Shown: positions 14,323-47,047, counted from the stretch's first letter. The stretch is DNA of 64,000 bases from IMGVR_UViG_3300032770_000002:124001-188000, one strand, 5' to 3'. The notes: generated by a model not told the origin, from the letters alone. A program made the numbers and translations.

Positions 14323-14793
14323 TTAGGATGGTGTTCGTAAGTTGTCAATGAGTTTCCTCGCCTTGGACTCAGTCAGCGCGGCTTCAACCTGAATCCAAGC
14401 TAGGAACTTGGCGTCGAGCAGGATTTCATACCCAGGGACCTCTTCGTCCATGATTGCGTCGATGCCACCTTGAGCTTGGATTCCCTTGATGCTGTTGATG
14501 TCATTCGGTCGATATCGCTCTTTGTAAGGGAGGTGGCGCCAAATCTCATAGGCGATGTCCTCCATCCCATACGGGTGGTCCTTCAGGCTTGGGTTTAATA
14601 ATTGTCGAAGCGGCACCTCGATCTCCGGGCCATAGCGTGCAACGGCCTTCTCAACGATGGCTTGAATCTGAGGCTCGGCCACGCCAGGGTGGATTGCGCC
14701 GCCCTTGTAGACCACTCGACGAACTTCCAAAAAGACTCGGCCAGCTTGTTTGCAAGCTGTCCAAAGTTTTTCATCGTATTCGTCGATTCTCAT
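14323..14793 (-). CDS. modular-array protein (one helical 'RYG' module A)
   Basis: AVARYGPEI...LLDAKFLAWIQVEAALTES-KARKLIDNL. Confidence 0.75.
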   Translation of the reverse strand: MRIDEYDEKLWTACKQAGRVFLEVRRVVYKGGAIHPGVAEPQIQAIVEKAVARYGPEIEVPLRQLLNPSLKDHPYGMEDIAYEIWRHLPYKERYRPNDINSIKGIQAQGGIDAIMDEEVPGYEILLDAKFLAWIQVEAALTESKARKLIDNLRTPS

Positions 14794-16598
14794 GGTGATT
14801 CAAGCCTACGGCTTATCTTGATTCGTTGAAGTTCGATCTTGAACCGCTTAAGGGCCTCTTCCTCATCCTTCCCGACGAGGAGGAAGATGTGGTCGATCTT
14901 GTCTGGGTTTGCGGTAGTGGTGCGGACGCCATGCATGTCGAGGTCGACGATTCGGTCACCGGTCTTAAATTGGTCGTTGGTGAGTCGCATCACCATCTCA
15001 AATGTGTCTTGGTAGTGGGCGCTGCTGTAGTCAATGGCGTGTCGAAATGGCTCGATCGCGCTGATGACCTCATCCGTGGTCGCGTCAAATGGAATGACAA
15101 TAACTTCCACGGGCGTCTCAAGCTCAGTCGAATCTGGCCTTCCAGGGCGGTTGTAGTAGAGGCGTTGGAACCTTGGCCCGTAGTCGTCCCTAGGGTGCTG
15201 TCGGTGGTGAAACTGGGCCATCTCATCAACGACAGAACGCGCTGAGGACTCGCCTAGCTTGTGGCGCAATATCCGGCCTTCGGTCTTTACCAATGCGTCA
15301 TGGAAGGCCTCTTGAAACGCGGTGGTGGCCAACTGCGAGATGACATGCCAACTGACGTATCGCGACACATAGTTCACTATTCCAGCCTCGTGGTTGCACG
15401 TTATCCAGATGTCCTCGAGCACGCGAAGCAAGTCATCGTCGACTTCCTCCTTGAGAAAACGCTTAAACCAAGCCCACTCGCGCCGATCGTAATTTACAAC
15501 GGGCGCCATCATGCGGCCAACGACGTCAGCGTTGGATTCGCCAAGCAAGCTGCTGACTCGGCCTCGTTCAAGCATCTTGAGGGCTCGCTCAAGCTGGTCT
15601 TTGAACTCACCCGTGTCCATCTCGGTGTAGTCCTCCTCGCTGACATACTCTTGGATGTAGTCGAGCACGCCGCGCATGTTGCCGCAGTAGTTGAAGACGT
15701 CGGCCACGATGTCAATGTGCTCTTGTGTGGCGCCGGACTGTTCAAGGTTGTAAAGGAGCATCTTGAGCTTTGGCCGGCCAAAGCTGATGATCGGGAAGAG
15801 GACTTCGGCCAGGCCAACGATGTGGGCCAGTCGGCGCAACTTGGCTCGCTTTCTGGCCTGTTCCATCTCCTCGTCACCTTCGTTGAGGTGCGTCCTGACG
15901 ATGTCGCCTAACAATCGACGGTGCTCGTCCGGGTTGAGCAGGACCCAAAAACTTTGATTCCACCCGCCGCGCTGGTGGATGTTGTAAAGTGTGTCGCCTG
16001 GACGCATCTGCGTGGCGACAAACTGGCCGATTCGTTCGTTGTTGTTTGAGTCGCCGCAGTGCCGGTATGGGTCAAGCAGCCTGTAAAGGATGTTGTGGTC
16101 GCCCGTGTGGACGTCAATTGTCGGCGCTTCAGGCAGGATGACGTCGCCTTTGCGTATTGGGTCTTTGTTGGCGACATTGTAGCTTGGGTCAAGTTCGGAG
16201 TCATCGCCAGCTCTGGAGAGGTCACGCTGCATCCGATAGTATGGCATCTCCATTAGGCTGTTGACGACAGAACGCGCCTTGGATTCAAGTGCGTCTCTCA
16301 TCTTGGCTTTTTGAATCAACAGCCTCAAGTAGCTTAAAAACTCGTCCGACGAGAACGTGGCGTAAAGTGCTTTGTCATTGGCATCGCCATGTTTCATCAT
16401 GTCAAGCTGGTCCACGAGGATGGTCCAGCCTCCGGGCAAGAGAGAAGCCAGTTCATCGCTTATTTTATCGCCAAAGCGAGCTTTGACTTTGTCGATCATT
16501 TGACGAGTAACGGCATCTTCAGGATTTGACGTGAATGCCATTCTAAAATTAACAATCTCGTCAGCTACATCCACCAAGAGGATAGGCGTGGGTATCAC
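14790..16598 (-). CDS. modular-array polyprotein (modules A, B, A, B with ES-xARxVV junctions)
   Basis: 602 aa; ARFGDKI, WVLLNPDEHRRL, LLVGKDEEEALKR; junctions ALES-KARSVV, LLGES-NAD, KLGES-SARSVVDE. Confidence 0.8.
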   Translation of the reverse strand: MIPTPILLVDVADEIVNFRMAFTSNPEDAVTRQMIDKVKARFGDKISDELASLLPGGWTILVDQLDMMKHGDANDKALYATFSSDEFLSYLRLLIQKAKMRDALESKARSVVNSLMEMPYYRMQRDLSRAGDDSELDPSYNVANKDPIRKGDVILPEAPTIDVHTGDHNILYRLLDPYRHCGDSNNNERIGQFVATQMRPGDTLYNIHQRGGWNQSFWVLLNPDEHRRLLGDIVRTHLNEGDEEMEQARKRAKLRRLAHIVGLAEVLFPIISFGRPKLKMLLYNLEQSGATQEHIDIVADVFNYCGNMRGVLDYIQEYVSEEDYTEMDTGEFKDQLERALKMLERGRVSSLLGESNADVVGRMMAPVVNYDRREWAWFKRFLKEEVDDDLLRVLEDIWITCNHEAGIVNYVSRYVSWHVISQLATTAFQEAFHDALVKTEGRILRHKLGESSARSVVDEMAQFHHRQHPRDDYGPRFQRLYYNRPGRPDSTELETPVEVIVIPFDATTDEVISAIEPFRHAIDYSSAHYQDTFEMVMRLTNDQFKTGDRIVDLDMHGVRTTTANPDKIDHIFLLVGKDEEEALKRFKIELQRIKISRRLESP

Positions 16599-17230
16599 TT
16601 GAGCAGCCTCCTGAAGTCCTTGCCAACGGCCTCGATGGACATGCGCTTGAGCTCGTCATACTCTTCGGGGTTGGCCAGCACAAGCCAGCTATTCAATGAC
16701 TGTTTTGACGCCCTAACCATGACGACTTTGTCTTCTGGATTTTTCGACAGGACGAATGACACGATCTTACTGGCCTCTAATTGGCCAGGAATGAACCGCA
16801 GTGGCCCAAGGATTGGCTGAAGATAAACGTCCCACCCAACTCCAAGTCGCAGGTCTTCGATGTCCGGCAGCGTGCCAGTCATGTCGGCTTCGTAAAGCGA
16901 AACGGTGACAGCGACCCAGTTCTCGAACTCCTTTGACATGATCACCTGGTAGGCGTCATTGCTCAGGTTGCGGGCGATCTCGTCAGAAATTCGTTGAGTC
17001 GCAAAGGTCCGTTCAAGCATGTTCGTGTGGGACCAGTTGTCTTGAATCGCTAACAGTTCGTCGAGCGCGTTAGAGACCTCCTTGCCGTAGCGCCGCTCGA
17101 CTTGTTTAAGAAAAGCTGGATAATCTTTAGAGTCGTCTGGAAACTTGCGTGAGATCCATCGAACCGTGCGTGTGCCGCGGTTGACGTCACCCATGTCGAT
17201 GTTGTCAATCAGTTGGCGTGCGACACTCAC
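16595..17230 (-). CDS. modular-array protein (A+B)
   Basis: SVARQLID leader; RRYGKEV; WLVLANPEEYDELKR. Confidence 0.8.
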   Translation of the reverse strand: MSVARQLIDNIDMGDVNRGTRTVRWISRKFPDDSKDYPAFLKQVERRYGKEVSNALDELLAIQDNWSHTNMLERTFATQRISDEIARNLSNDAYQVIMSKEFENWVAVTVSLYEADMTGTLPDIEDLRLGVGWDVYLQPILGPLRFIPGQLEASKIVSFVLSKNPEDKVVMVRASKQSLNSWLVLANPEEYDELKRMSIEAVGKDFRRLLK

Positions 17231-18369
17231 TTTCCAAGCTCCTCATGCTGGGCCATTTCCAATTGAGAATCGATGAGTCGGCGTGCGCTAGACTCAGATA
17301 GCAGTGACATCGTCACCTTGGACCACGCAACAAACTCATTGCTTATGACCTTGTCGAGCACGTTTATGGTAAAGTTTCCATTGTCAAGATTTTGTTTAAT
17401 CCACTCGTCAACTGGAAGTCCTGGGTGTTTTAAGATGGCCTTGACAATAGTGGCCGCTTCGTCGCCATAACGCTGCTTGACGCGTTCAAGGTATGCACCT
17501 AAAATTCGCTCCCTTCTAGACTTGAGCCGGGCTTGAACCTCACCATACTGTGCGCCGGCCATTACGTGCGGGTCGTGCCTCGGCGTGTCCGTGGCCTGTT
17601 GATAGAGGGTGTTCAGGTCCCAGACCACGCTGTTGAGAACGTCAGTCCACTTAGACTTATTCTCTTGAAGGGTCGCCTCCATCTTCAACCACGACCGGAA
17701 TTTCGGGTCAAGGATCGCCTGGTAGACTTGTTTGATGACCGGGTCGTTTTGGCTATTGTAGACCTGCTTGCAGACCCACCTAGAGTCGGTTCCAGCCGAG
17801 TTGGTGACGAGCCACTCGGCCACCTCTTGCCCACATCGCTGTGACAAGCGTTCAAGGAAGCGGCTGTAGGTGTCGTAGTTGTCCACGTCACCGTGCTTAC
17901 CATATCGCGATAGCACGTCGTGCAGGTCATCGAGCACTGGCTTCCAGTCGTCCCACACCTTTCCCATGTCTATGTCGCCAAACAACCGGCGGTGCTCAGA
18001 CTCATGCAAAGCGGCCGTCACCTTGACCCAACTCTTGAATGCCGGGTTGAGGAGCTCCTCGACCATCTTTCGGGTCTCATACTGGTGATAGCCCTGGTGG
18101 TAAAAGATCTTGTCAATGACGTGTGAGATGACCGCGCCAGACGACTCAGCTCGCGTGCCTTCAACTCCCGGGGCCATGACTTCCTCGTGACCGACAAAGA
18201 CGTGCTGGTCCAGGTAGTCGACCGTCTCTTGGCTGAGGCCGCGTGAGAGAAGCAGGTCGAGGAAGTTGCCGTAAGACTCGTCGTCGTAGGACATCGAGTC
18301 GGCCAGCTTGATTAGCCCGCGTAATACGGGCCTCAATTCAGTCCACAGTTGGTCTAGTGTGTAGGCCAC
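17227..18369 (-). CDS. modular-array protein (three tandem module A copies)
   Basis: Three repeats ending LNPAFKSW..LHES, LDPKFRSW..LQEN, ISNEFVAW..LSES. Confidence 0.8.
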   Translation of the reverse strand: MAYTLDQLWTELRPVLRGLIKLADSMSYDDESYGNFLDLLLSRGLSQETVDYLDQHVFVGHEEVMAPGVEGTRAESSGAVISHVIDKIFYHQGYHQYETRKMVEELLNPAFKSWVKVTAALHESEHRRLFGDIDMGKVWDDWKPVLDDLHDVLSRYGKHGDVDNYDTYSRFLERLSQRCGQEVAEWLVTNSAGTDSRWVCKQVYNSQNDPVIKQVYQAILDPKFRSWLKMEATLQENKSKWTDVLNSVVWDLNTLYQQATDTPRHDPHVMAGAQYGEVQARLKSRRERILGAYLERVKQRYGDEAATIVKAILKHPGLPVDEWIKQNLDNGNFTINVLDKVISNEFVAWSKVTMSLLSESSARRLIDSQLEMAQHEELGK

Positions 18370-18375
18370 GCTGGT

Positions 18376-18383
18376 CTAACTAG
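18376..18383 (-). promoter_or_regulatory. possible late-promoter motif CTAGTTAG
   Basis: 6 nt upstream of the 18369 start; same octamer upstream of 33595 and 51909. Confidence 0.3.
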
Positions 18384-18393
18384 CCCACTGCGG

Positions 18394-18999
18394 TTAGGGC
18401 TGGTTTGTGACCGTGATGCTGAGCCGAGCACGAAAGAACAGGCCTGGTGCGTTCGTAATGGCCAGCTGGTATTGGGCGGCGGGTGTCCACGTCTTCAGGT
18501 CCGAGTTGGTCTCCACGGTTGTGTTGACGTAATAGACTGCACCCGTTGAAGGTGGCGTTGGAAGCGGGGCGACATAGCTGGCTTCAGTTGAAAAGGGTGA
18601 TTCAAGGCCAGCCGACGTGTAAGCGGTGGCTGCAAAGAAGTTTGTTGACCCGGCGTCGACGGCGACGATGAAGTTTGTGGTGTTGCCCGCGTTGTAGTTG
18701 GTCGAGTAGGTCCTCGACGCTGGTCCTTGGTAAATCTTGTAGCCAACGACATCGGGTGAGACCGACGGGTTCCACGCCAGCCCAACATTGACCGCGTTGG
18801 TTAGCGGGACTCCAATTCTATTGCCCAAGGACCGTGGTATCGGAGCTACGGTCTTGGCCTTCAGGCCCGGAGGTGATGGTGGGCCTGAAGGCTTCACCAC
18901 AGTTTGCGTCTTGCACCCCACGATGAAGCCGACGGCCAAAATGAGGGTCCAAGTTGAGAGTCGCGAGTTCATAGCACTTGAAAATACACCCAGGATCAT
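18394..18999 (-). CDS. predicted lipoprotein with fibronectin type III domain
   Basis: Lipobox ...AVGFIVG-C; LAWNPS...GYKIYQG...FFAATAY...LESPFS FN3 pattern; C-terminal VETNSDLKTW...LFFRARL; start may be 18972. Confidence 0.75.
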   Translation of the reverse strand: MILGVFSSAMNSRLSTWTLILAVGFIVGCKTQTVVKPSGPPSPPGLKAKTVAPIPRSLGNRIGVPLTNAVNVGLAWNPSVSPDVVGYKIYQGPASRTYSTNYNAGNTTNFIVAVDAGSTNFFAATAYTSAGLESPFSTEASYVAPLPTPPSTGAVYYVNTTVETNSDLKTWTPAAQYQLAITNAPGLFFRARLSITVTNQP

Positions 19000-19730: not shown

Positions 19731-19780
19731 AAATGTGATATGTTCTATCGAGCTAAATGTCAGACATCTTAAATAGTTGA

Positions 19781-20209
19781 ATGGGCTTTGACTCACAGTC
19801 GATCTCCGACGCCGCGATTACCATCGAGCCTGACCGATACTATCTCGGCCTGTGGTTCCTTGAAATCGAGGAGAAGGGCGTCAACTTCCTCCTGACGGCG
19901 TCACGAAAACTGGACGACGCTGAGCCAGCAGACTGGGTTGTCGAGTATCGTTGGCGCGACATAAGCGACCCTGGCCCTGTGACGTGCACGTCAGGAGTTT
20001 ATCCTGCCAAGACGGCAATTGAGGTCGAGGCCGAAATTGACAGTTTGCTAAAGCACCTGACGAGCCTTGAATTTAAGGACGGCCCAAAGGGGCACCCGGA
20101 CAACCTTCGCATCTTTGACTTTTATCCCGCCCACTGTGGCGGGCGTGAATTGTCCGATCGTCTCATCGTGGCTCCAGCGGCGTGGATGTGCGAGCGGGCG
20201 GTCGAATAA
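19781..20209 (+). CDS. hypothetical protein
   Basis: 142-aa ORF. Confidence 0.65.
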   Translation: MGFDSQSISDAAITIEPDRYYLGLWFLEIEEKGVNFLLTASRKLDDAEPADWVVEYRWRDISDPGPVTCTSGVYPAKTAIEVEAEIDSLLKHLTSLEFKDGPKGHPDNLRIFDFYPAHCGGRELSDRLIVAPAAWMCERAVE

Positions 20210-20212
20210 TTT

Positions 20213-20244: not shown

Positions 20245-20251
20245 GTCACAT

Positions 20252-21376
20252 ATGATACCGCCTGATTGGGTTCCGACGGTCATTGAAGTGGATTCGCTCA
20301 ACTCCCTTGAGCGGCTCTTGACGCCGCGCCGCTATGGGACCGTGCCGGGTGGCAACTACGGAAACACCAACGTTTTTGCCCACGACCTCGCCTACTGCGT
20401 TTCATCATCGCTGGCCGCCTTTCAAAACAGCGGCAAGCTCATGTGGGGACAGACCAACACCATGCACATTGCGTTTGACTTGGCCCGCAATCGCATGCCA
20501 TATTACTTCATCGATGGCCAGCTTGCTCGGGCCATTGCCGCAACAGCCGTTCCAAAGGACATGTCATTCGGCGAGATTCAGTGGCCGCTCAACGCATTGA
20601 CGTTCGCCTATCCGCTCGATTTCATGCGTGAACTGACTGGCTACAACGTTGACATCGGATTTGTCTCAGGCGCGATCTGGCCGCACAGCGGCATCACTAA
20701 ACCGCCCATTGAAATCTGCCCTGAGTTGATCGCTTTCAGCGTTCCTGCATTCCAGGTCGACGAGCCGCGAATGGCCGTGACGTTCGTTGACCACCGTGAC
20801 TTCGTCGTCCAAAATTTCCTGGCCGCGTCTTATCATGCGTCACACGAACTTTCGTCCCCAATTTCGGACATCGACACGATTGAATACCTTCAGTGGAAAT
20901 TTAATAGCGGGCTTGAGACCACGATGAACTTGCCGGTTGCTGACGAGCAAGTCGTCAGCCGTAAAGTCGTGGCGCTCTTCATGAAGACGCTGCTTGTCAT
21001 CTCGGCCCTTGAGCCACGCTATGTCGAGCGTGAGGCGAAGCTGCGCGACCCAATCGTCAAACGCGGGGTTCACAAGCCAGCGCTGTGGCGCCCAAACTTT
21101 ATTGGGCGGGCGTTTACGCTTCCAAAGCACACGCCGGTTGGAACACACGCGACGCCCATCTACCACGTTCGTCGGCGGCACGTCGTTCGCCAGGCCATTG
21201 GCCCACGGGACAAGCTCGTCCACGTCTCGTCACTGCCGCGCAAAGCTGACGGAAGGACCGATTGGGACGCGGTCACCGACGAGCAGAAGGCCGCGTTTTG
21301 GAAGTGCCATGAGAACCGTTGGATCGAGGAACAATGGCTCGGCGTAAAGGAGGACGATGCCAATATTCCTTCTTGA
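20252..21376 (+). CDS. hypothetical phage protein with C-terminal HxRRxHxxRQxxG...WI motif
   Basis: PIYHVRRRHVVRQAIG...RWIEEQWLG; ATG 7 nt after the -10 box. Confidence 0.75.
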   Translation: MIPPDWVPTVIEVDSLNSLERLLTPRRYGTVPGGNYGNTNVFAHDLAYCVSSSLAAFQNSGKLMWGQTNTMHIAFDLARNRMPYYFIDGQLARAIAATAVPKDMSFGEIQWPLNALTFAYPLDFMRELTGYNVDIGFVSGAIWPHSGITKPPIEICPELIAFSVPAFQVDEPRMAVTFVDHRDFVVQNFLAASYHASHELSSPISDIDTIEYLQWKFNSGLETTMNLPVADEQVVSRKVVALFMKTLLVISALEPRYVEREAKLRDPIVKRGVHKPALWRPNFIGRAFTLPKHTPVGTHATPIYHVRRRHVVRQAIGPRDKLVHVSSLPRKADGRTDWDAVTDEQKAAFWKCHENRWIEEQWLGVKEDDANIPS

Positions 21377-22001
21377 TAATGACGGCTCGCGCTCTGGCTG
21401 CCTATACGAGCCACGTGTCTCGACAAACAAGTGGGTTGAGACCCTGGCGCCGAGGCGTGGCTTTAAGACGTGGCGTTACAACTTTGTCGTCACTTGTGAG
21501 GTCTTGCTCGTGGACGGCCGGTCACGTCGGTTTCGTCTTTCACGCCCGTGCGATTCGGCCACGATTCGCCATGTAGACCCAACACTTCTGACAATCATGA
21601 CCGCCAACCGGTTAAAGGACCGCGTTCCACAGTCATTGGTCACTGAGGTTGAAAAACGGGCCAAGAAGTGGATTGATGCTCAGGCGATTAGGGCGGAATA
21701 CCTTCCACCAATTGAAAGACTCTACTCCGGCGTCAAGGCCTCCATGCTGTTTCCTCGAACGGCCGATCTTCGATTTATCGTCATCAACACCGACCTTGAC
21801 AACGACGTCTCGGCCGAGTTGATGGCTTCGTTTTTAAGCCAGCCTAGGGGCGCTAACGACAAGCTCATTCGAGTCATGTCTAATGAGCAGGCCGTCACGT
21901 CGATCTACTACATCGTCACGCCAGACGAACTTGTTGAGCTCAAGCGGACGATTACAGATTGCAACCGCCAACGGGTTTCAAGTCTTCTCGACCGTTCTTA
22001 G
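21357..22001 (+). CDS. modular-array protein (D+B)
   Basis: VLLVDGRSRRF...EVEKRAKKWID; IYYIVTPDELVELKR...RVSSLLD. Confidence 0.75.
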   Translation: MPIFLLDNDGSRSGCLYEPRVSTNKWVETLAPRRGFKTWRYNFVVTCEVLLVDGRSRRFRLSRPCDSATIRHVDPTLLTIMTANRLKDRVPQSLVTEVEKRAKKWIDAQAIRAEYLPPIERLYSGVKASMLFPRTADLRFIVINTDLDNDVSAELMASFLSQPRGANDKLIRVMSNEQAVTSIYYIVTPDELVELKRTITDCNRQRVSSLLDRS

Positions 22002-22005
22002 CTTC

Positions 22006-22206
22006 ATGGGACCTCATGACGCGATTTTGCGCCGATTTGCTGAGGCCAAGCCGACTGCCATTGAGAAACTAGAGCAGATCGTGAGCTTGGCTAAAGAGGC
22101 GATGCCTGGCCTTGAGCTGCAGGACCAGCTTGACCTTTGGGCCGCGATGGCCAGCATTGATGAGATTGCTGCCCGCGCGCAGCAGAAAAGTGAGAAGGTC
22201 GAGTGA
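22006..22206 (+). CDS. small hypothetical protein
   Basis: MGPHDAILRRF...; GTGA coupling to the next gene. Confidence 0.55.
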   Translation: MGPHDAILRRFAEAKPTAIEKLEQIVSLAKEAMPGLELQDQLDLWAAMASIDEIAARAQQKSEKVE

Positions 22207-22982
22207 AGGACAACTTCAGGTGCCCAGACGACCTTTACGTCGACGTTGAGGGCGTGCTTGGTGTGCGCCCACAAAAATCGGCGCAAAACTTCGACCCACT
22301 CTCACAGGAGACACAAACTGGGTATAAAAATGTCCTCCACCGGGCGCACATTTCTTGCAAAAACCAATTGTGGTCAAGTGTGCGTAATGGTGGGCAGCCA
22401 ATTAGGTATCGCCTTGCGTGGAATTACTTGGACAACAATGAACCCGTGGCCTTTATTGATATGGTTGAGATTCGACGCATGAACTTTGTCCACAAAGACG
22501 GCACGCCTTATGACATCCGCCCACTTGAGGCCAAGTTCTTGCGGACGCAGATTGACAAGTTGCCAGAGAGTCGAGCTCAGCAGGTCATTGAGATGGCGTA
22601 TTATTCGCTCCACGATCACCCACCGAGTGAGCAGTGGGTCAAGGACAACAACGTGGACGTCGTCCTGACGAAACACGTCCCGATATGGGACATTGCGGCG
22701 ACGAACGTGCACCACCTGTTTCATGGCATGAAGTGGACTGACTCGTCACGCTACGATGCCACTGACAACCTGCTGGCGTTTCTCAACACGAAGGAGGGTG
22801 ACGAGACGTTCGTCCGAGTTCGAATCATTCACCCTGACACCCTCGCCCTTGTGAATCGAGCTGGATTATCGAGCGGGCTGACTGGCATCTACTACGTCTT
22901 GGCAAAGCCTGAACAGCTTGAAAAACTCAGGCGCGAGATGATCAAGACCCAAGGGATGAAGGTCAAGAAGGCCCTCAAGTGA
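22203..22982 (+). CDS. modular-array protein (C+B)
   Basis: HKDGTPYDIRPL and IYYVLAKPEQLEKLRR. Confidence 0.8.
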   Translation: MKDNFRCPDDLYVDVEGVLGVRPQKSAQNFDPLSQETQTGYKNVLHRAHISCKNQLWSSVRNGGQPIRYRLAWNYLDNNEPVAFIDMVEIRRMNFVHKDGTPYDIRPLEAKFLRTQIDKLPESRAQQVIEMAYYSLHDHPPSEQWVKDNNVDVVLTKHVPIWDIAATNVHHLFHGMKWTDSSRYDATDNLLAFLNTKEGDETFVRVRIIHPDTLALVNRAGLSSGLTGIYYVLAKPEQLEKLRREMIKTQGMKVKKALK

Positions 22983-23653
22983 ACGCGCGCCAGACAATTG
23001 ACGAGATGGCCCACATGATCTTGGGGCGGCGCAAGAAGCCAACTGTCACCGACATCAAGGTGGGTGTTGATGTTTATTCAACGCTTCCCGCGTTGAAGGC
23101 TTTCGCCGTGGCCGTGCTGTCAAATGGCCAGTTTAAACACTTTGAAGTTACAGAACCAACCGATGCCGATGATACAGCCATGGTCCACGCAGCTAGGGCC
23201 GTCAGCGGGGGTGATTCTTTCTATGCTACTTTTCCAATGACCCAGCTTGAGGTAAGGCTTCGCGAAAAGAACTGGGCAAAACTCCAGTCAATGCGTGAGG
23301 AAGTTGTGCGCCAGGCCAAGGCCTGGGTTTACGACAATGAGCGTGAAATCAAGTATGGAAAGCTCAAGCGCCCGCAGTCGATAAAGCTCGACTACGACGC
23401 TGCCCCGCTCGTCAAGGGATTTCGGTTCATTCGCTTCGCCAAGGGCTCACGCAAGGGGATGGACAGTGTCTTGGCTTTGACCCAAAGCGCCGCGCCAGGG
23501 GAGTCCGTGCTCAAGGTCGAAGGGAGTGACATGACCCACACGGGTCTGCGATACGTGTATTACGTCCTGCTCACCCCTGAGGAACGCCAAGAGCTTGAGC
23601 GTCGGCGCATCCAGGTTGAACGGGAGCGCATTGGAGGCATCCTCGGCCAATGA
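22979..23653 (+). CDS. modular-array protein (D+B)
   Basis: NARQTIDE leader; AVLSNGQFKHF...VVRQAKAWV; VYYVLLTPEERQELERR...RIGGILG. Confidence 0.8.
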   Translation: MNARQTIDEMAHMILGRRKKPTVTDIKVGVDVYSTLPALKAFAVAVLSNGQFKHFEVTEPTDADDTAMVHAARAVSGGDSFYATFPMTQLEVRLREKNWAKLQSMREEVVRQAKAWVYDNEREIKYGKLKRPQSIKLDYDAAPLVKGFRFIRFAKGSRKGMDSVLALTQSAAPGESVLKVEGSDMTHTGLRYVYYVLLTPEERQELERRRIQVERERIGGILGQ

Positions 23654-24426
23654 ACGCGAAGGACGTCATCGAGGCCAGGTTTAAACACCGGCCACACCCA
23701 GGCCTTTGCATCAAGGTGACGCTGAGCATTGGCAAGGCACCACCCAAGTTTAGTCAGCCATTTCACCTGATCGTTCCAGTTCCAGCCCGAGTTCCATTTG
23801 ACAGCGTTGAAGAGTGGTGGGATGGCACTGAATCGCCAGCGGGCATAGAGCTGTGGGACATGATGCAACAGCAGCTTCCAAAATTCTCAAAAAACTTGGA
23901 AAGATACGGCCTAGTAAGAAATTGGCGCTACGCCATCATGAGGAACGGGAAGAGGATCAAGTTGAAGGGCCGCTCACCGAACCTTCAACTAGAGGAGCCC
24001 TATGTCGTTGCTTATGTCCACAGGAACGGCAAGCCCTACGACATTCGCCCATTTATGCGTGACCGCGTCTCAGGCCTGCTCGGTGAGTCACGTCCACACC
24101 CTGGACTTTGTGTTCAAATCGACATTGACGTCTATCGCTATGATGCAACATCGACCGTCCATGAGCCAAAGGTAATGACGATAGTGGTGCCAGTTCCAGA
24201 CGGGGTTCCTTTCGACGACATTCAATACTGGCTTAGGCAGAAGGAAAGGCCTGGTTCATTTGTGACGTGGTGGCCATATATCGAAGCGCAACACCACATC
24301 GACAAAAACACGGTCAGCGCCATTGTTTACCCAGGTGGAATTGCCGGCTACGTTCACGCTGACGGAACACCTTACGACGTCCGCCCATTTTTCGGTGATC
24401 GCGTGAAAGGCATACTTGACAAATGA
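23650..24426 (+). CDS. modular-array protein (C+C)
   Basis: Two RPHPGLC...H(R/A)(N/D)G(K/T)PYD(I/V)RPF..DRV.G(L/I)L units. Confidence 0.85.
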   Translation: MNAKDVIEARFKHRPHPGLCIKVTLSIGKAPPKFSQPFHLIVPVPARVPFDSVEEWWDGTESPAGIELWDMMQQQLPKFSKNLERYGLVRNWRYAIMRNGKRIKLKGRSPNLQLEEPYVVAYVHRNGKPYDIRPFMRDRVSGLLGESRPHPGLCVQIDIDVYRYDATSTVHEPKVMTIVVPVPDGVPFDDIQYWLRQKERPGSFVTWWPYIEAQHHIDKNTVSAIVYPGGIAGYVHADGTPYDVRPFFGDRVKGILDK

Positions 24427-24854
24427 AGGCCAGACAACTCATTGACGCTAAGCTCAACGAGCCACACTACAACAGCCCTGAGGAAGTTCGGCTGGCCCGC
24501 GTGACGTTCAACGTCTCCATCGAGAATGTTGAGGGTGAAGTGACCCGCAAGATGGGGCCGTTTATGGTTGACGTTCACCTCGATCCTGGGGAACTTGAGG
24601 CCAAAGGGTTGACACTGGCCAGCAAGCGTTTCTGGCAAGGTAATGGGGAGTGGAGACTGTGGAAAGAGTTCAGGGGGCAGCATCAAAAGGATTATACTGT
24701 GATCGGTGCGTTGATCGCCGATCATTATCTCGTCGACGCGGACGTCGTTGACGTCAAGATCGTTGACTACTTCGGCAACCCGGTCGACCTGCAGAACGTC
24801 GCTCGTGGTTTCATCAAGGGGCAGCTTGACAAGCCAAGTGAAAACGAGGAGTAG
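24423..24854 (+). CDS. modular-array protein (divergent C)
   Basis: KARQLID leader; DYFGNPVDLQ...FIKGQLDK. Confidence 0.7.
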   Translation: MKARQLIDAKLNEPHYNSPEEVRLARVTFNVSIENVEGEVTRKMGPFMVDVHLDPGELEAKGLTLASKRFWQGNGEWRLWKEFRGQHQKDYTVIGALIADHYLVDADVVDVKIVDYFGNPVDLQNVARGFIKGQLDKPSENEE

Positions 24855-26277
24855 CCATCACATCGCTGAGGAGGACGTCCCACACCCTGGGCTGTGCGTC
24901 AAGCTCACCCTGGGCGTCGTCGTGAAGCGTCGCCTTGACTATGAGCTTGGTTATCGTGAGTGGGAAGTCTACGGGGAACAGGCCGCATCGCCAGTCATCG
25001 TGCCGATTCCAGATAATTGGCCGTGGCGAGCCGCCGATGAGTGGGTCTATGCCCTTATGGATCATGAGGTCGACCTGGTCGACATCGTCCAGAAACAGAG
25101 CCCGGAGACGTGGAAAAAGGTCGAGGAGTGGCGGTATGAACTGACTCCACGCTATGACGTCAAGGAGGAGTTTGAGGTTGTCGAGATTCTTGGGTGGTGC
25201 CACGCTGATGGCACGCCTTACGACATCCGCCCGCTTGAAGCTGGCCGAGTTCGAGACATTCTTGGCGAAGCTGAAGATGAGTGGGACCGCTGCCTTCAAG
25301 ACGCGCGCAAGCTCTACGTGGAAATAAAGAAGCTGTGGCATGAAAGTGGCTATTACCACAACAAACTTGGCGAAAAGGTTCTCAGTGACGTCGAGTTTCA
25401 CTACGGCCAGGACGTCGCCAACTGGTTGAGGTATTTTATGGGCGTCCACCCACGGCAGGTTGGGTGGACACTTCAGCGTTGGAGCCCTGAGATCATTGCC
25501 GACCACATGGACCCGGTCAATGGGCAGGAACACCCCGAAGCCTTGGCCACGCTTCGAACGCCTGAGTTCAGGCACTTTTTGAGTCGGGCCATCGCAAGGG
25601 CAAACGTCAGGTCAATGCTTGGTGGTGGCACGCTTGAGTCACTTGACGATTTTCGCCCACACCCTGACCTCCATGTCGTGGTTAAGTTACGCATCTATGG
25701 CCCGCCTTGGGCTCATGACGAGGCCACTGCTCCTGATAATCGTGGCTATAACTTGGAAGAGTGGGATGACGCCATCGTGACCGTTCCAGTTCCTGAGCAC
25801 TGTTCATTTGATGAGATTGAAAATTGGGTCTTTCAGCGCGATACGAGTGAAGGGTCGATTATGTGGTGGCACGAGTTTAAAGCCCAATCGCCTGAGGAGG
25901 CCCAGCGCATTGAAACCGAAAAAGGTTTACACTTAGGCGTGGCTGTGGTAGGGGTAATAGGGTATCAACATGGCGATGGGCGGCCATACGACATTCGCCC
26001 ATTCCTTAGGGATCGCGTCGGCAGATTGTTAAACACAGACGAAGATGTTATGTCAAATGCAAGAAAAGTCATCGATGAGTTCACGAGTGCGTCTGGCGTT
26101 CCTGGCCGTGACATGGGGCCGGCGCCGCTTGTCGCTCCACCGCCAGTGCGCCCACGCCCGACGACGCCAACGCGTCCGGCTCAGCCGACTAAACCTGGCG
26201 TGAGGCCATGGCACCCGACGCCTCGCCCTGGAGTAAACCCACGCCCCAAAGCCAGGTTTCGCAGGACCGGTGTCTAG
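24838..26277 (+). CDS. modular-array polyprotein (C+A+C plus Pro-rich tail)
   Basis: GTG 24838; PHPGLC, HADGTPYDIRPL, FHYGQDVANWL..TPEFRHF, HGDGRPYDIRPF, then MSNARKVIDE and a Pro-rich tail. Confidence 0.8.
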   Translation: MKTRSSHHIAEEDVPHPGLCVKLTLGVVVKRRLDYELGYREWEVYGEQAASPVIVPIPDNWPWRAADEWVYALMDHEVDLVDIVQKQSPETWKKVEEWRYELTPRYDVKEEFEVVEILGWCHADGTPYDIRPLEAGRVRDILGEAEDEWDRCLQDARKLYVEIKKLWHESGYYHNKLGEKVLSDVEFHYGQDVANWLRYFMGVHPRQVGWTLQRWSPEIIADHMDPVNGQEHPEALATLRTPEFRHFLSRAIARANVRSMLGGGTLESLDDFRPHPDLHVVVKLRIYGPPWAHDEATAPDNRGYNLEEWDDAIVTVPVPEHCSFDEIENWVFQRDTSEGSIMWWHEFKAQSPEEAQRIETEKGLHLGVAVVGVIGYQHGDGRPYDIRPFLRDRVGRLLNTDEDVMSNARKVIDEFTSASGVPGRDMGPAPLVAPPPVRPRPTTPTRPAQPTKPGVRPWHPTPRPGVNPRPKARFRRTGV

Positions 26278-26717
26278 TGTCTAGAATAATCAGCCACGAG
26301 ACGGCACCACCTGATAAATTCTTCAGGTGGTAAATTCCATTTTATCACATTGATGACTTTGTGAACCCACTGGACATTTCCAATAATGTAACCTTTTGAA
26401 GAATCAATACGGTCAAGAGATGCAGTATGGCCGTTGTCACTACATTGCATCCATTGTCTACTAGATTTGGCCTGTCTCCAGTGTCTAGAAAATGTCAGTT
26501 CAACTCCGGTTAAAGCACAACATTTATGCTGTTTAAGAAAAAGTTCCCAGCCATATTTAATTGTGATAGAAAACTTACGATTGGTTTTTCTGGCGGTCCG
26601 TCTTAATCCATTCCAATAAGCTAATGAAATATCGCCGTATCCTTGCCATGTTTGCCATTTCTTTGGACAACACGCTCGTCTTTGGAGTGGAGTATGACGA
26701 TATGGCGTTCGTAGCAT
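26274..26717 (-). mobile_element. HNH homing endonuclease inserted antisense in the array
   Basis: CALTGVEL...ASLDRIDSSKGYIIGNVQWVHKVIN.IK; AT-rich; opposite strand to all neighbours. Confidence 0.85.
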
Positions 26718-26732
26718 TAGGAAGAGAACTTC

Positions 26733-27212
26733 ATGGCTGAGGAACTTCCATTTGCTGTTAAGGTCGACGTGCCGGGCGAGATTGAGGGCCAGTATTTTGT
26801 CGCCCACTGCGTCGCGACGATCATGCCACGTGCGGCCTCGCCGGCACATGTGAATTCACCGACATGGGTGAATGCACCGACGTGGCCTGAGCTTAGGAAG
26901 TGGGTCGAAAATTTTTCATCCATGACCGGGTTTCCTGGCCGAATAGGCCAGATTGATTCTGTCGTGTTTGACAGCGTTCGTGACCAGTTTGCGGAAGCGG
27001 CTTCTCAACTTGGAAAGAGGTCAGGACCCCTGCCGAAAAACTACACCATCGATTGGAAAAACGCCACGTTCACGTGGCTCGATCGAAACCAAGAACCGTT
27101 TGACACGAGGCGACTTGACGGCGAGTATGTCCGCCAACAACTTGACAAGAGCCTACAACATGAAAGTTCGTCCAAGTCAGTGATTGACGATGTTTTTCGC
27201 CGTTACCGATGA
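26733..27212 (+). CDS. modular-array protein (divergent C)
   Basis: WLDRNQEPFDTRRL..YVRQQLDK; ends HES-SSKSVIDD. Confidence 0.75.
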   Translation: MAEELPFAVKVDVPGEIEGQYFVAHCVATIMPRAASPAHVNSPTWVNAPTWPELRKWVENFSSMTGFPGRIGQIDSVVFDSVRDQFAEAASQLGKRSGPLPKNYTIDWKNATFTWLDRNQEPFDTRRLDGEYVRQQLDKSLQHESSSKSVIDDVFRRYR

Positions 27213-27229
27213 AGTGGCCATTTTTGGCA

Positions 27230-28444
27230 ATGACTGCGCGTGAAATTATTGACGAAGTGGCTGGGTTGCACCTCAAGGCTACGGTCAGAGTTCCCGCGTC
27301 GGTGACTGGGAGCGTGACGGTCATTGGCACTGGGGAGATTCCAACCGGGGTCGTGCCGTGGAACTTACTACGCGAGTGGTCGCATGGCGAGATGAGCTAC
27401 AGCGCTGATTTTGCGGACTTTATTCGTCCACGCATCGCAAACAAGCTTGTCGACGCCGTGGTCAACAACTTGATCGACAAGCACCCGTTCATCATGCGAT
27501 TAGGTTCGCGGCCAAGGCGGGCTAAAATCATCGAGTGGATTCAACGCCGGATCACGTGGCCGCTTGCTCACCCGGAGAATCACCCGCCGCCAGAATCGGT
27601 CAAGTTTGAGTGGATCAACCCTGACGGCACACCCTATGACTTGCGGCCATTGGAGGCCGATTTTACACGCGGGTTGCTCGGCGAAGGTGGAGGTGGCTAC
27701 GCGGACCTATATGGCGACCTGTGTGGTGAGACTGATGTGACTTTTAGGCTGTGTCAACAGGACCAACGAGACAAGTTTCGGACGATCAATGTCAAGTTGC
27801 CAGTTAACAGACACGTCGATTGGCTTTGGGCCGAGAAGTGGGCCACTGACGCCATTTGGTATGCCTTTGTTTATGGCGAGCCGTATAATAACCTTGGCAA
27901 CATGATTCTGTCTGACGAAGACCGAGCTCTTCTTTCACCCAAGCCTGGAGTCAATGTTAAATTTCACAGCATGGGCAAAATCCGGTGGGTTCATGCCGAT
28001 GGCACGCCTTACGACACCCAGCCGCTTTATCGCCGGTTCATTGGGCATAAGCTCAGCGAGGAGACGACGAAAATTGACCACGTAAAACTGTGGGTTGACG
28101 TCTATCTGGGCGACACACGGCCAACTTCGCCCAATGAAAGGTCAGTTGAGACCATTGAAGCCACGATCCCTGTGGGCGTTGGTGTGCGCAAGCTAAGCAA
28201 ATACGCTGAATCACATCGCTACCTGACGCCGAACGTCATCATGGACAGGAGATGGGATTCTGGCTGGTGGTTGCCAGAGTTCGTTAATGAGCTCGAGTCG
28301 ATGAACCGAGATGAACTGTTCCATCATGGGGTCTGGTTTGGGCTGCGTAAGATTGAGTATTATGACGAGCACAACGAGTTGGTCGACCCACACATCGTTG
28401 ACCGGCTAGGCGTCAGTTACATGCTCGACAAGAACGCTACTTAA
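27230..28444 (+). CDS. modular-array polyprotein (C+C+divergent C)
   Basis: TAREIIDE leader; NPDGTPYDLRPL, HADGTPYDTQPL, YYDEHNELVDP; alternative start 27209. Confidence 0.8.
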   Translation: MTAREIIDEVAGLHLKATVRVPASVTGSVTVIGTGEIPTGVVPWNLLREWSHGEMSYSADFADFIRPRIANKLVDAVVNNLIDKHPFIMRLGSRPRRAKIIEWIQRRITWPLAHPENHPPPESVKFEWINPDGTPYDLRPLEADFTRGLLGEGGGGYADLYGDLCGETDVTFRLCQQDQRDKFRTINVKLPVNRHVDWLWAEKWATDAIWYAFVYGEPYNNLGNMILSDEDRALLSPKPGVNVKFHSMGKIRWVHADGTPYDTQPLYRRFIGHKLSEETTKIDHVKLWVDVYLGDTRPTSPNERSVETIEATIPVGVGVRKLSKYAESHRYLTPNVIMDRRWDSGWWLPEFVNELESMNRDELFHHGVWFGLRKIEYYDEHNELVDPHIVDRLGVSYMLDKNAT

Positions 28445-28448
28445 GTCA

Positions 28449-29720
28449 ATGAGCGAGAATGCGCGCAGGCTAGTTGATTCTGTCTTTGAGATGGCGCTAG
28501 ACCCAGGCCAATATCCGAACTTTGTTCACCCGGAGCGTCGGCGACAGTTCACGCGGGGTGAACACCCGATGGCCAAAAATCCGGCCTACCCACCCTTTAC
28601 GCCACAGCCAGGGCAGAAGGAAGTCAACTGGGAAGAGGTCGTGGGCGGCGGCCAATACAGGGACACCCTTGCGCGGATCCAGACGTTCTTCAATCGGCTT
28701 CATGGCAACGAACCTGGCGATCAGACTTACACATTTCAGACCATCGCCCAGTCCATGTTTCAGGCCGTTGAAGACGCGATGGGGATGGAGAAGCCCTATC
28801 GCCGCGCGCTTGAAAAGCTGGCCATCGACTTGCTGCTTGAGCAACCTGAGTTTAAGGCGCTGAAGGAGCCATATGAAAAGGGTGAGTTCAAGATCGACGC
28901 TAAGCTTGGCGCGCAGGGTGACCTTCGCCTCGTCGCCTTGTCGTCGGATGAAGTAACGCCGACGCAGCAGGAGGAATTTGCGGCCTTCCAAGAGATGGCC
29001 GGCTTTGACGACGAGGTGGCCAAGCGGCGCGTCCTTAACGCCTTGATTGCTGGCGGAGCGGTCTCGAAGAACTACGCCTACCAACTGATCAACTCGAAGA
29101 TTGAGAAGATCTCACCCGGCTTGCCGACGCTCTACGGGATGGCGATGGCCGGGACTGAGTTGGGCTATTTTGCGTTGCCAGACGAGGCCGTTGGTCAGGC
29201 CGCTCGCACACCCGGGGCGGCGGGTGGTTCAATGGAACTTGACATGTCCGACGTGCCAACCATCAAGGTCAGGGCAATGATCTTCCCGATGCTCGTCCAA
29301 GAGCTGGCCAAGGGCTTTCTTGAATTGGCCGCCTATGAAGGCTTGCCAAAGGACCCTGCCGTTGCCAAGGGCGTCATTGCCAAAGCTGACCTAGCTGACG
29401 AGGAGTCGTGGGCGATGATCATGGGCCGCGGGCTGTGGATGCGGTTTGTCAACGCCATCGGTGCGGATGATGACGAGGTGACACTGCACCTCTACAACCG
29501 GATTGCCGCGTTGCCGGCGGCTGAGTTCAACCAGACCATGCGGACCATTCAGGCCGGTGGGCCAGAAGCCGAGCGCCTGCTGCGTGAGATGGCCAAGTCC
29601 ATTCGTGATGACATTGAGGCTGAAAAGCACGGGACGCTTGAGGAACCCGAAGGTGGCGAAGGTGGCGAGGAGGGTGGCGACGAGTTTGGCATTGACCCAG
29701 ACGCGTGGAAAAATGGATGA
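28449..29720 (+). CDS. large-phage hypothetical protein, acidic C-tail
   Basis: ENARRLVD leader; KRRVLNALIAGG, PTIKVRAMIFPMLVQELAKG; resembles a family I recall from large uncultured phages. Confidence 0.8.
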   Translation: MSENARRLVDSVFEMALDPGQYPNFVHPERRRQFTRGEHPMAKNPAYPPFTPQPGQKEVNWEEVVGGGQYRDTLARIQTFFNRLHGNEPGDQTYTFQTIAQSMFQAVEDAMGMEKPYRRALEKLAIDLLLEQPEFKALKEPYEKGEFKIDAKLGAQGDLRLVALSSDEVTPTQQEEFAAFQEMAGFDDEVAKRRVLNALIAGGAVSKNYAYQLINSKIEKISPGLPTLYGMAMAGTELGYFALPDEAVGQAARTPGAAGGSMELDMSDVPTIKVRAMIFPMLVQELAKGFLELAAYEGLPKDPAVAKGVIAKADLADEESWAMIMGRGLWMRFVNAIGADDDEVTLHLYNRIAALPAAEFNQTMRTIQAGGPEAERLLREMAKSIRDDIEAEKHGTLEEPEGGEGGEEGGDEFGIDPDAWKNG

Positions 29721-30049
29721 ACCGTGGTGGTCATCTTCGCAGGTTTAGGAGGCGGCTGATGGCCGAATATCTTGCGTCTAATGAAGCGGCAGGTTGGGGG
29801 CGTGGTAATTATCCTCTTAAATTTTGCAATTCTCTTGGACCGATGGGTCGACATTGCCGGCTGTGGCTTGAAAATGAATTGTTTAAGCTTCGCGATGCTG
29901 GTAAAATTTTACACAACGTGGAGGTCAAAGACGGGTTCAGACGCAGTGTTTTTTATCCTGATACTTTAGCAGTTCGACGTTCCATCCAGCGTCATGTTGG
30001 AGGTCTGCTGAGCGACTCACAGATCGTCATCGACTCACTTTACAAATAA
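29717..30049 (+). CDS. hypothetical protein
   Basis: ATGA-coupled; ends RHVGGLLSDS-QIVIDSL like the array junctions. Confidence 0.55.
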   Translation: MNRGGHLRRFRRRLMAEYLASNEAAGWGRGNYPLKFCNSLGPMGRHCRLWLENELFKLRDAGKILHNVEVKDGFRRSVFYPDTLAVRRSIQRHVGGLLSDSQIVIDSLYK

Positions 30050-30081
30050 TTGTTTACAAATCTAAGGTGAGGGTGTAAAGT
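30050..30081 (+). promoter_or_regulatory. putative early sigma70-type promoter
   Basis: TTTACA, 17 bp, GTG-TAAAGT. Confidence 0.65.
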
Positions 30082-30087
30082 GCGCCC

Positions 30088-30606
30088 ATGTTCGACGTCA
30101 CAACGCTGAAAATTGGGCCGCTTCCAGAGGCGCTTGTCTCGGCTTCCATTGACTTCGCCACTCAATTTAGCGTGAAGATGCACGAGACCATGATGCCGGC
30201 GTCTGTCTTCTTCACCAAGCAGGGACGATTTGGGACGGTCAAAATTCCGGTAATCCAAGACCCCAGTGACAAAAATGTGGTCTCGCAAGTCATTCGTGAT
30301 TTCAGGCGTGATTGCGATGCCGTCACTTTTGTCGCTGAATCGTGGATAGTCGAGCGGCCAGTAAACAGGAAAGACCCAAACAAGGAAGACGTCAAGAAGA
30401 TGGCGGACAAGATGTTTCCGACTGGCATCATCCACGACGAGCCGGATCGTAAGGAGGTCGTCATGCTATGCATCTACGTCAAGTCAAGGACACTCATTCT
30501 TACCGCGCCCATCGAACGCACCCCAGACAAGGTCAGTCTTGGCGATTGGGAGGTGACTCAGGACTCCGCAGTCGATTCTCGACTCGCAGGGAGGTTTATA
30601 GATTGA
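30088..30606 (+). CDS. hypothetical protein
   Basis: 172-aa ORF 6 nt after the promoter. Confidence 0.75.
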   Translation: MFDVTTLKIGPLPEALVSASIDFATQFSVKMHETMMPASVFFTKQGRFGTVKIPVIQDPSDKNVVSQVIRDFRRDCDAVTFVAESWIVERPVNRKDPNKEDVKKMADKMFPTGIIHDEPDRKEVVMLCIYVKSRTLILTAPIERTPDKVSLGDWEVTQDSAVDSRLAGRFID

Positions 30607-31244
30607 TGACATTCGGTGCCAAAGCGTTGATTGACTCGCTTCTTTACGAGATGCCACGCCACCTGACTAGGAAGCCTGAGCATGACCGGCCGCGGATAAC
30701 GTATACGACTGAGTTGGACGGGTGGAACGGCAACTTCTTGTGCAAGGCGACTGCAATCCTTTCGAGCGGTGAGACGAAGGTCTTTAAGACGACCGTTCCA
30801 ATGACGCCTGAACAACGTGAAACGTGCAAGACACTCAATTTCGACCAGGCCAAGAGGCAGTATCCAAAGGAGACTAAGCAAGTTTATGACGAGGCCGTCT
30901 CGGCCGCGCGCGAGTGGATTGAAAAGAATGACGAGCCATACGTCATGATGGACCAGTCACTCAACTACGACCTCATCGGTGACGACCTGCTGTGGGTTCT
31001 CAAGGGTTTCCGATACGTTGTTGGAAATAAAGGGGTGTTGGGTGGCGGTCCGGCAGCGTCCTTAGCGGCCTTGGCCAACATGATGAAGCCAGGAGACAAG
31101 GTGGTCCAGGTGACCACCCGCGACCACCCACAGGATTTTCGCTTAACCTATTTCGTCGTTGTCAACCCTGCCGAGGGTGAGGAACTCCACCGTCGGGCCA
31201 TTGAGGCCAAGCGCAAAGAGGTCAGTTCATACCTTGAAACATGA
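30606..31244 (+). CDS. modular-array protein (D+B)
   Basis: GAKALID leader; AILSSGETKVF...AVSAAREWIEKN; YFVVVNPAEGEELHRR. Confidence 0.8.
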   Translation: MTFGAKALIDSLLYEMPRHLTRKPEHDRPRITYTTELDGWNGNFLCKATAILSSGETKVFKTTVPMTPEQRETCKTLNFDQAKRQYPKETKQVYDEAVSAAREWIEKNDEPYVMMDQSLNYDLIGDDLLWVLKGFRYVVGNKGVLGGGPAASLAALANMMKPGDKVVQVTTRDHPQDFRLTYFVVVNPAEGEELHRRAIEAKRKEVSSYLET

Positions 31245-31621
31245 GCGCGCTGATGATCATCGATGCCGTCTACGAGGAAGACGGGATGAAGGCCAACTAC
31301 CGACTTCAGCAAGTCGGCCATACGTTAGCTGAAATGGGCGCCTGGTTTGGAAGCTTGTGGTCTTGGTCTCGTTCAACAGGATTACGCGAGGTTTCAACAG
31401 AATTACGCGAGCAAATTGTCAAGGAGATTGATGACAGGTTTGGGGTTCCTGTCGGCGGCGTCTTTCGCGAGTGCCTTAATCGCTACTTCATCAGTGACAT
31501 CGTCAGCTACCTTGCCAACGCTGAACACTTGCCGGCCATCCAGACATTCATCAGTGACGAGTGCCAAGCTTGGCTAAAGGCCAGGATCTTCAAGGCCAAA
31601 TTTGAAATGAGGCACGGGTGA
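31241..31621 (+). CDS. modular-array protein (A)
   Basis: IDDRFGVPV...FISDECQAWLK. Confidence 0.7.
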   Translation: MSALMIIDAVYEEDGMKANYRLQQVGHTLAEMGAWFGSLWSWSRSTGLREVSTELREQIVKEIDDRFGVPVGGVFRECLNRYFISDIVSYLANAEHLPAIQTFISDECQAWLKARIFKAKFEMRHG

Positions 31622-45932: not shown

Positions 45933-45939
45933 GGTTAAA

Positions 45940-47045: not shown

Positions 47046-47047
47046 AC

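Follow-up and report, generated by a model that had tools for sequence, protein, structure and literature searches.

What proteins does a phage encode when it strings the same few domains together in many different orders, and what do these proteins share? The question is raised by a locus of an uncultured jumbo phage, found in positions 124,001-188,000 of IMGVR_UViG_3300032770_000002 (JGI Ga0335085_10000140), a 230,253-bp contig from a wetland metagenome. This whole stretch of 64,000 nucleotides is called the window below, and coordinates refer to it unless stated otherwise. At 14323-31621, 14 genes are composed of 30 units that belong to four families, named A, B, C and D. A sequence-only reading had taken them for an expanding, recombining library of virion-packaged effectors or decoys, diversified against host defences. 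We find that a short leader peptide of these genes is a peptide-level signal common to non-homologous proteins. The joint between a trailer helix and this leader is the exact place where cassettes are linked, separated and rearranged, and relatives of the phage differ by whole cassettes.

The phage is known from DNA contigs of two wetland runs. Of its 230 kb, the 129 kb at contig positions 88-217 kb were read. Among 50,697 GenBank phages, none is related to it at the nucleotide level.

A leader and a trailer frame the cassettes

The leader, 10-14 residues long, opens many units and genes and follows the pattern (M/S)-x-(A/S)(R/K)-x-(L/V)-(I/V)-(D/E)-x-(L/V)-x-E-(M/S). The trailer, a helix with the pattern P-(L/F)-x-x-x-R-(V/I)-x-x-L-L-(G/D)-(E/D), closes every A, B and C unit. 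The two meet at internal junctions of the form L-L-G-E-S-x-A-R-x-L-I-D..., where the trailer is directly followed by the leader; natural stop codons fall 0-3 residues past L-L-G-(E/D/Q). The terminal RVxxLL(G/D) helix, the E-S junction and the shared leader, all noticed in the sequence-only reading, are indeed present.

The leader reaches well beyond the four modules. It stands 1-4 codons past the start codon of 30 open reading frames (ORFs) in 118.8 kb, against 2.7 expected, and the ORFs that bear it span at least 12 unrelated families. Leader/trailer framing extends to at least eight domain families besides the four modules. Synonymous codons for the Ala and Arg of the leader vary freely among copies, which rules out a motif at the DNA or RNA level and indicates that selection acts on the peptide. 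Since unrelated proteins share it at their extreme N-terminus, the leader is best read as a sorting or assembly signal. It is absent from ribonucleotide reductase and tubulin (both in the window) and from PolA, DnaB and ligase (in relatives). About 13 of the 21 window leaders have (L/I/V)-x-E within the next 10 residues, where roughly 2 would be expected, as tallied by eye. Distant relatives carry a variant of the leader, M-S-x-A-E-R-x-V-x-x-L-L-x-E.

Four mutually independent module families

Each unit was left out in turn, and a profile hidden Markov model (HMM) made from the other members of its class was used to score it against 1000 shuffles of itself. Scores exceed those of every shuffle for 27 of the 30 units; the exceptions are A_14790_u4, A_14790_u3 and C_27209_u3, at 1, 38 and 42 of 1000 shuffles, respectively. 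In an all-versus-all BLASTP comparison of the window, C units match each other down to 5e-16 and D+B proteins at 6e-11. Searches with jackhmmer from single units in the window retrieve the other C and B units, together with the core A units. The modules thus recognise one another, as the families proposed in the sequence-only reading require.

Between classes, module profiles score no more than 7.4 bits, and they match none of the window's other ORFs. The possibility that the four families are one diverged repeat was ruled out, with an hhalign probability of at most 5% between them. A full HMM search with the C profile against 1.84 billion representative proteins found 24 proteins, several of them with multiple copies; judged by this search, the C family is real yet appears confined to one small lineage.

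Architecture of the array

The array consists of two divergent operons, 14323-18369 (-) and 21357-31621 (+), whose members overlap by their start and stop codons. Its units comprise ten A, seven B, ten C and three D. Every D unit precedes a B unit, and B units come last in nearly all cases. The genes lie where the sequence-only reading had placed them, in two oppositely oriented blocks, and its architectures stand with two corrections: gene 14790 reads A-B-A-A-B, not A-B-A-B, and gene 24838 also has a Pro/Arg-rich basic tail.

On the minus strand, a single A of 156 amino acids (aa; 14323-14793) has at its C-terminus a junction and a leader remnant, LTES-KARKLIDNLRTPS, before the stop codon. 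The A-B-A-A-B protein (14790-16598), with 602 aa the largest of the array, divides into A (16284-16598), B (15873-16283), a marginal A (15537-15872), A (15249-15536) and B (14793-15248); its internal junctions read ALES-KARSVVNSLMEMP, LLGES-NADVV and KLGES-SARSVVDEMA. The A+B protein of 211 aa (16595-17230; A 16889-17230, B 16598-16888) carries the leader M-SV-ARQLID. The A-A-A protein of 380 aa (17227-18369) ends in LLSES-SARRLIDSQLEMAQHEELGK, and a word-based homologue search with it returned only the query.

The plus-strand operon opens with a D+B protein of 214 aa (21357-22001), which has no leader at its N-terminus and has an orthologue in L008, a related contig described below. It is followed by C+B (22203-22982, 259 aa; C 22203-22568, B 22569-22979), with the junction KLPE-SRAQQVIEMAYY and missing in L008, and by a second D+B protein (22979-23653, 224 aa) with the leader M-N-ARQTIDEMA. 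The C-C protein of 258 aa (23650-24426; leader M-N-AKDVIE) has a single C as its L008 orthologue, and here too a word-based homologue search returned only the query. Conversely, the single divergent C of 143 aa (24423-24854; leader M-K-ARQLID) corresponds to C-C in L008. The next protein (24838-26277, 479 aa) is built of C (24853-25269), A (25270-25620), C (25621-26052), a leader and the Pro/Arg-rich basic tail (26053-26274); its orthologues are C-C-tail (P0050) and C-C-C-C-tail (L005, another related contig). A single C of 159 aa (26733-27212) ends in LQHES-SSKSVIDDVFRRYR, again a junction plus leader remnant. The C-C-C gene (27209-28444) likely starts at 27230, with M-T-AREIID, and its units lie at 27230-27685, 27686-28060 and 28061-28441, the third being divergent. 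The last two genes are a D+B of 212 aa, counted from M-TFG-AKALIDSLLYEMP (30606-31244; the ORF opens at 30468), and a single A of 126 aa (31241-31621) with the degenerate leader M-SALMIID.

The Pro/Arg-rich tail, 74 aa long with a net charge of +11, follows a leader and is kept in three relatives. It is seen at 26053-26274 (+) in the window and at the C-termini of L005 6991-8805 and of P0050, and may be a DNA-binding or anchoring segment.

An assembly artefact was ruled out: a Logan contig from an independent assembly (230,155 bp, depth 18) spans 22979-28444 with zero differences, so that the tested 5.5 kb are identical and show no joints. Short identical pieces are also present in the second wetland sample.

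An HNH endonuclease gene lies inside the array at 26274-26849 (-) (PHROG endonuclease, 8e-20); its true start is probably a Met near 26717, with which the overlap with gene 26733 disappears. A second HNH endonuclease gene sits inside a different cassette array (L010 4235-4732 (+)). The first D+B gene is separated from the following cassette gene by a small conserved ORF of about 66 aa (22006-22206 (+)), which has a homologue at L008 3003-3206 and bears neither leader nor trailer; the start of a longer ORF that opens at 21883 and overlaps gene 21357 is probably not real.

Relatives differ by whole cassettes

A conserved, leader-tagged and non-repeated acidic protein of 423 aa, which belongs to none of the four modules, is encoded at 28449-29720 (+). 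Its homologues number 46 and come from related large phage contigs, some of them 207-251 kb long. The protein is marked by a low-complexity acidic insert and by a C-terminal tail, also acidic, that ends in D-x-W-(K/R), as also in P0002-P0047. It has no PDB or PHROG match, and tblastn against GenBank phages gave only two matches, both partial, in the unannotated uncultured phages LR745206 and LR756502 of about 640 kb. Some relatives have a single C or two C modules joined in frame to a 28449-type N-terminus through ...E(T/S)-MSARxAIDxVLMEMP. In distant relatives the homologue is preceded by a lipoprotein gene and by a gene for a protein made of the leader and a Pro-rich part.

The contig L005 holds the closest homologue (58% identity) in a locus syntenic with the window. 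Window profiles find C (3e-38), B (3.5e-28) and D (7e-10) on it, in the architectures X-C-B, C-C-C-C-tail, C-C-C and (D)B-D-B. The X-C-B protein (L005 5871-7001) has, ahead of its C-B pair, an N-terminal domain of 170 aa that shows a Cys...His...Asp pattern; a transglutaminase-like assignment of this domain, made by eye, found no support in Pfam.

L008, a forest-soil contig, is closer and collinear, with 36-72% amino acid identity to the window. Five cassette-level events separate the two: C+B is missing, CC has become C, C has become CC, C-A-C-tail has become C-C-tail, and different selfish genes are inserted. The L008 insertion consists of a Zn-ribbon gene and a GerE-type helix-turn-helix gene, one gene further upstream than the HNH gene of the window. 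Orthologous modules are 36-55% identical between the two contigs, against 60-72% for the neighbours 20213 and 28449. Further relatives have CCCC-tail, CCCCC, C-D-B, C-C-D-B and B-D-B.

Because relatives hold B, C and D in different arrangements at the same locus, module order is not fixed. Module A was not detected outside this genome; at this locus the relatives carry the other three. The idea of a modular library that changes by gain and loss of units is therefore borne out by L008 and the other relatives, and the virion packaging that the sequence-only reading had added to it is consistent with the data but unproven.

Searches for known domains and folds

Pfam and PHROGs recognise no known domain in any array protein, and PADLOC found no family at E ≤ 0.01 for the ten array proteins submitted. 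PDB sequence profiles for A, C and D+B gave nothing below E = 0.06. Scores in the ESM Atlas reach 0.59 at most, none significant, and Foldseek searches of PDB and BFVD gave best E-values of 0.04-0.7 with template-modelling (TM) scores of at most 0.35. The statement of the sequence-only reading that it recognises no known domain holds in these searches.

A model of module C, obtained from ten paralogues, is of good quality, with a predicted local distance difference test (pLDDT) of 88 and a predicted TM score (pTM) of 0.77. It shows a sheet of long strands, three helices and a terminal helix; neither PDB (best E 0.67, TM 0.23) nor BFVD (best E 0.11) contains a structural neighbour of it. The AlphaFold model of the D+B protein 22979 is weaker (pLDDT 73), and Foldseek found no structural neighbour for it.

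Tagged genes outside the array and genomic surroundings

Outside the four modules, the leader opens the window genes 2527, 5105, 7277, 28449, 51431, 51909, 52325 and 52918. The protein at 2527-3090 (+) begins V-K-SRSLIDRIAMLEA and has a weak NTP_transf_5 match. The one at 5105-5782 (+), of 225 aa, begins MGE-SRQLID, has a trailer-like end, HRILGR, and resembles, by eye only, a tagged protein at L005 398-1015. The third (7277-7534 (+), 85 aa) begins MK-SRDLID; the part of P0059 after its C module resembles its domain, again by eye only. Four consecutive tagged genes of other families occupy 51431-53424 (+), namely 51431-51901, 51909-52328, 52325-52921 (with Cys/His-rich repeats) and 52918-53424. 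Two further proteins of other families, within and beside the plus-strand operon, show the frame at their C-terminus: an ORF of 114 aa (29705-30049 (+)) ends in a trailer and leader remnant, RHVGGLLSD-SQIVIDSLYK, and a protein of 161 aa (31618-32103 (+)) ends in a junction and leader, DIGES-AARLAIDNLF....

Two tagged proteins from elsewhere in the contig have recognisable domains. One is DMP19-like, of a DNA-mimic family (L009 4292-5449, contig ~190.8-192.0 kb; Pfam 29 bits, 1.8e-6), and the other belongs to Amidoligase_2 (L013 407-1489, contig ~88.5-89.5 kb; Pfam 32.5 bits, 1.1e-7); both are above the cutoff. At least four further amidoligase-type genes of the contig are untagged, for example 54781-56022 in the window. 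These two proteins, both outside the array, are the only hints toward counter-defence among the tagged ones.

The arrays are flanked by a 1789-aa LamG/PKD protein (33595-38964 (+)), a melibiase-like protein of 1131 aa (39449-42844 (+)) and a beta-propeller-like protein of 349 aa (12994-14043 (-)), which are probably fibres or host-surface enzymes. A 702-aa protein that adjoins the upstream array has a weak Tail_P2_I match. Upstream, the contig contains more arrays, with new families, extra B modules and one more HNH insertion.

The phage also encodes a class II ribonucleotide reductase, a thymidylate kinase and HNH endonucleases. An enzyme cluster at 44868-47719, with a radical SAM/SPASM gene (-), a transketolase-N/TPP fragment (-) and a methyltransferase gene (+), may constitute a pathway that modifies nucleotides or peptides. 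Directly upstream of the window there is a second radical SAM/SPASM gene. Genes of counter-defence type, NADAR, a dual-specificity phosphatase and cpYpsA, are found elsewhere, at contig ~117.7-118.7 kb (L003/L010), and Tad5 in the relative L007 (15026-15550).

Proposed capsid loading and its alternatives

What would such a frame be for? The explanation that we favour, with a probability of about 40%, is that the leader is a capsid-loading tag, that the junctions are cut by a protease and that the mature domains are delivered with the DNA. It is preferred because both ends of the leader fit aliphatic-x-Glu and because phage T4 offers the closest precedent. Within one uncultured jumbo-phage lineage, the four modules would be those members of a larger cassette-protein set that have been amplified, each cassette comprising an N-terminal leader helix, a variable domain and a C-terminal trailer helix. 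Like the capsid targeting sequence of T4, the leader would bring proteins into the assembling prohead. There, a prohead protease specific for aliphatic-x-Glu(/Asp) would cut after the trailer, between Glu and Ser of L-G-E-S, and after the leader, between Glu and Met of L-x-E-M.

Multi-cassette proteins would in this way be released as single domains, with ends identical to those of single-cassette gene products: a cut after the junction Glu would leave internal units with the S-x-A-R N-terminus that single genes have after their Met, and with an L-L-G-E C-terminus. The mature domains would remain inside the capsid and reach the host together with the DNA, there to act as early effectors; alternatively, they may form an internal DNA-associated body, a fate that the Pro/Arg-rich basic tail would fit. 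If targeting and processing information resides only in the frame, domains can be gained, duplicated or lost while everything else is left intact, which would explain the combinatorial architectures. We also count in favour of capsid loading that the arrays adjoin virion-type genes, the 1789-aa LamG/PKD protein and the 702-aa protein with its weak Tail_P2_I match.

Several observations weigh against it. With Pfam, contig 88-217 kb yielded no recognisable gene for a prohead protease, major capsid protein, portal or terminase. At junctions in relatives the putative P1 residue is often Asp, not Glu, and Asp at that cleavage position blocks processing in T4 (PMC9026906). The trailer is kept at natural C-termini, which need no cut, so it must do more than serve cleavage. 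In two distant relatives the only widely conserved tagged protein, that of the 28449 family, is encoded not among head genes but between those for DNA polymerase A and NAD-ligase. Finally, the overall frequency of (L/I)-x-E in the module proteins shows neither enrichment nor depletion.

Part of this evidence would suit intracellular multi-domain proteins that are neither cleaved nor packaged, with leader and trailer as structural linker helices or a shared interaction motif; they could, for example, pair head to tail into a larger assembly, or act as counter-defence binders. The trailer retained at natural C-termini, which the models show as a helix integral to the C and B domains, the frequent Asp at junctions, the lack of recognised protease or head genes nearby, and the lower conservation of orthologous modules compared with 20213 and 28449 are all in keeping with it. 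A linker helix, however, leaves unexplained why non-homologous single-domain proteins carry the same peptide so far above expectation, and why stops and starts fall exactly at the joint. We consider this explanation rather unlikely.

It is improbable that the leader sorts proteins to a destination other than the capsid, such as a compartment built by the phage in the infected cell. Such a compartment would agree with the tubulin/FtsZ-family gene of the phage, which is PhuZ/TubZ-like (58191-59396 (+); TubZ-like C-terminal domain, Pfam 3.7e-9), and with the distant relatives, where the tagged 28449 protein with its acidic, Trp-ending tail stands in a DnaB-PolA-ligase block. However, the tag is missing from PolA, DnaB and ligase of the relatives and from the ribonucleotide reductase of the window, the 129 kb of contig read contain no recognised gene for a chimallin-like shell, and the protease-like junctions would be left without explanation. 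Protein import into known phage nuclei is not known to use a linear N-terminal tag either.

Least probable of all are exposed virion parts (decoration, fibre-associated or receptor-binding) that dock by the leader onto a common structural adaptor, much as the conserved N-terminal anchors of multiple tailspikes do: the fibre- or baseplate-like neighbours (LamG/PKD, melibiase-like, beta-propeller-like and Tail_P2_I) and the high module turnover agree with this, but the domains are small, alpha/beta or helical, without similarity to Ig, lectin or beta-helix folds, and the same leader marks a DMP19-like protein and an amidoligase, neither of them likely to be exposed at the surface.

If the leader is a capsid-loading tag, the virus re-sorts a large DNA-delivered arsenal by means of a 12-residue address label and a cuttable joint. 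This would give testable packaging rules for giant phages, so far known for T4 only, about 30 candidate first-strike effectors with new folds, and possibly a tool or natural blueprint for loading foreign proteins into phage heads. A wider, more doubtful form of the same proposal is a plug-and-play cargo system in which a universal frame holds all sorting and processing information, so that any domain could be packaged in the capsid and then cut free by the maturation protease. Its cargo would comprise at least 12 families, among them four novel folds, a DNA-mimic-like protein and an amidoligase, encoded by about one gene in eight; no known virion-cargo repertoire would be as large or as modular. 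Whatever the destination, a linear sorting or assembly tag on about one gene in eight would be new phage cell biology.

Comparison with known systems

The internal proteins of T4 carry propeptides of 10-19 residues, the capsid targeting sequences, which bind the prohead core and are removed by gp21 after L/I-x-E; for entry into that core the peptide is both necessary and sufficient (PMC9026906). IPI, IPII, IPIII and Alt thus resemble the proteins described here in having a short N-terminal peptide on unrelated proteins, one that also ends, as a sequence pattern, in aliphatic-x-Glu, and the defining trait of that system, a short propeptide common to non-homologous proteins, is found among our 30 ORFs. 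The T4 cargo, fast-evolving small proteins and an enzyme, is similar as well. In contrast to the four to six genes of T4, about 30 are tagged here; cassettes are concatenated with internal tags, a conserved trailer helix closes them, and Asp is often at the putative P1. PHROG, Pfam, BFVD and PDB searches gave no homology to IPI, IPII, IPIII or Alt.

The paralogous ejection or inner-body proteins of phiKZ, 201phi2-1 and SPN3US offer a second likeness: they too form paralogous families in giant phages, and they are cut after x-x-Glu by gp175/gp245. SPN3US gp245 cuts after A-x-E and prefers Ser at P1' (PMC10052503). The junctions described here read L-(G/S/T)-E followed by Ser, with Asp frequent in relatives, a sequence pattern only; L-G-E before Ser matches A-x-E before Ser in its P1' residue. 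The propeptides of the phiKZ and SPN3US families are 111-254 residues long, their architectures are fixed and they have multiple S/A/G-x-E sites; neither a short leader in common nor modular shuffling has been reported in them. Here, the leaders have 10-14 residues, and P3 is Leu, Ile or Val, not Ala, Ser or Gly. PHROG and BFVD searches found no homology to these ejection-protein families. The phage itself is not recognisably phiKZ-like, and its relatives carry PolA, DnaB and NAD-ligase.

Combinatorial domain architectures in proteins of mobile elements are also seen in polyvalent proteins. Those of phages and conjugative elements are very large, combine LPD with recognisable enzymatic domains, and have been proposed to reach the recipient cell with the DNA and to be processed into pieces. 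The units of the present array, by comparison, have 100-150 aa and an unknown fold, are held in a specific leader/trailer frame, and make up proteins of no more than 602 aa. No LPD or enzymatic Pfam domain was found in the array proteins, LPD matches in the ESM Atlas scoring 0.48, which is noise.

Tagged, packaged and fast-evolving proteins are thus already known from T4, and families of ejection-protein paralogues from phiKZ-like phages. New are the number of about 30 tagged genes, the two-sided frame, the concatenated cassettes, their turnover between relatives and the lack of any known fold. There is a substantial chance that this locus represents something more general than the known tagged-protein systems.

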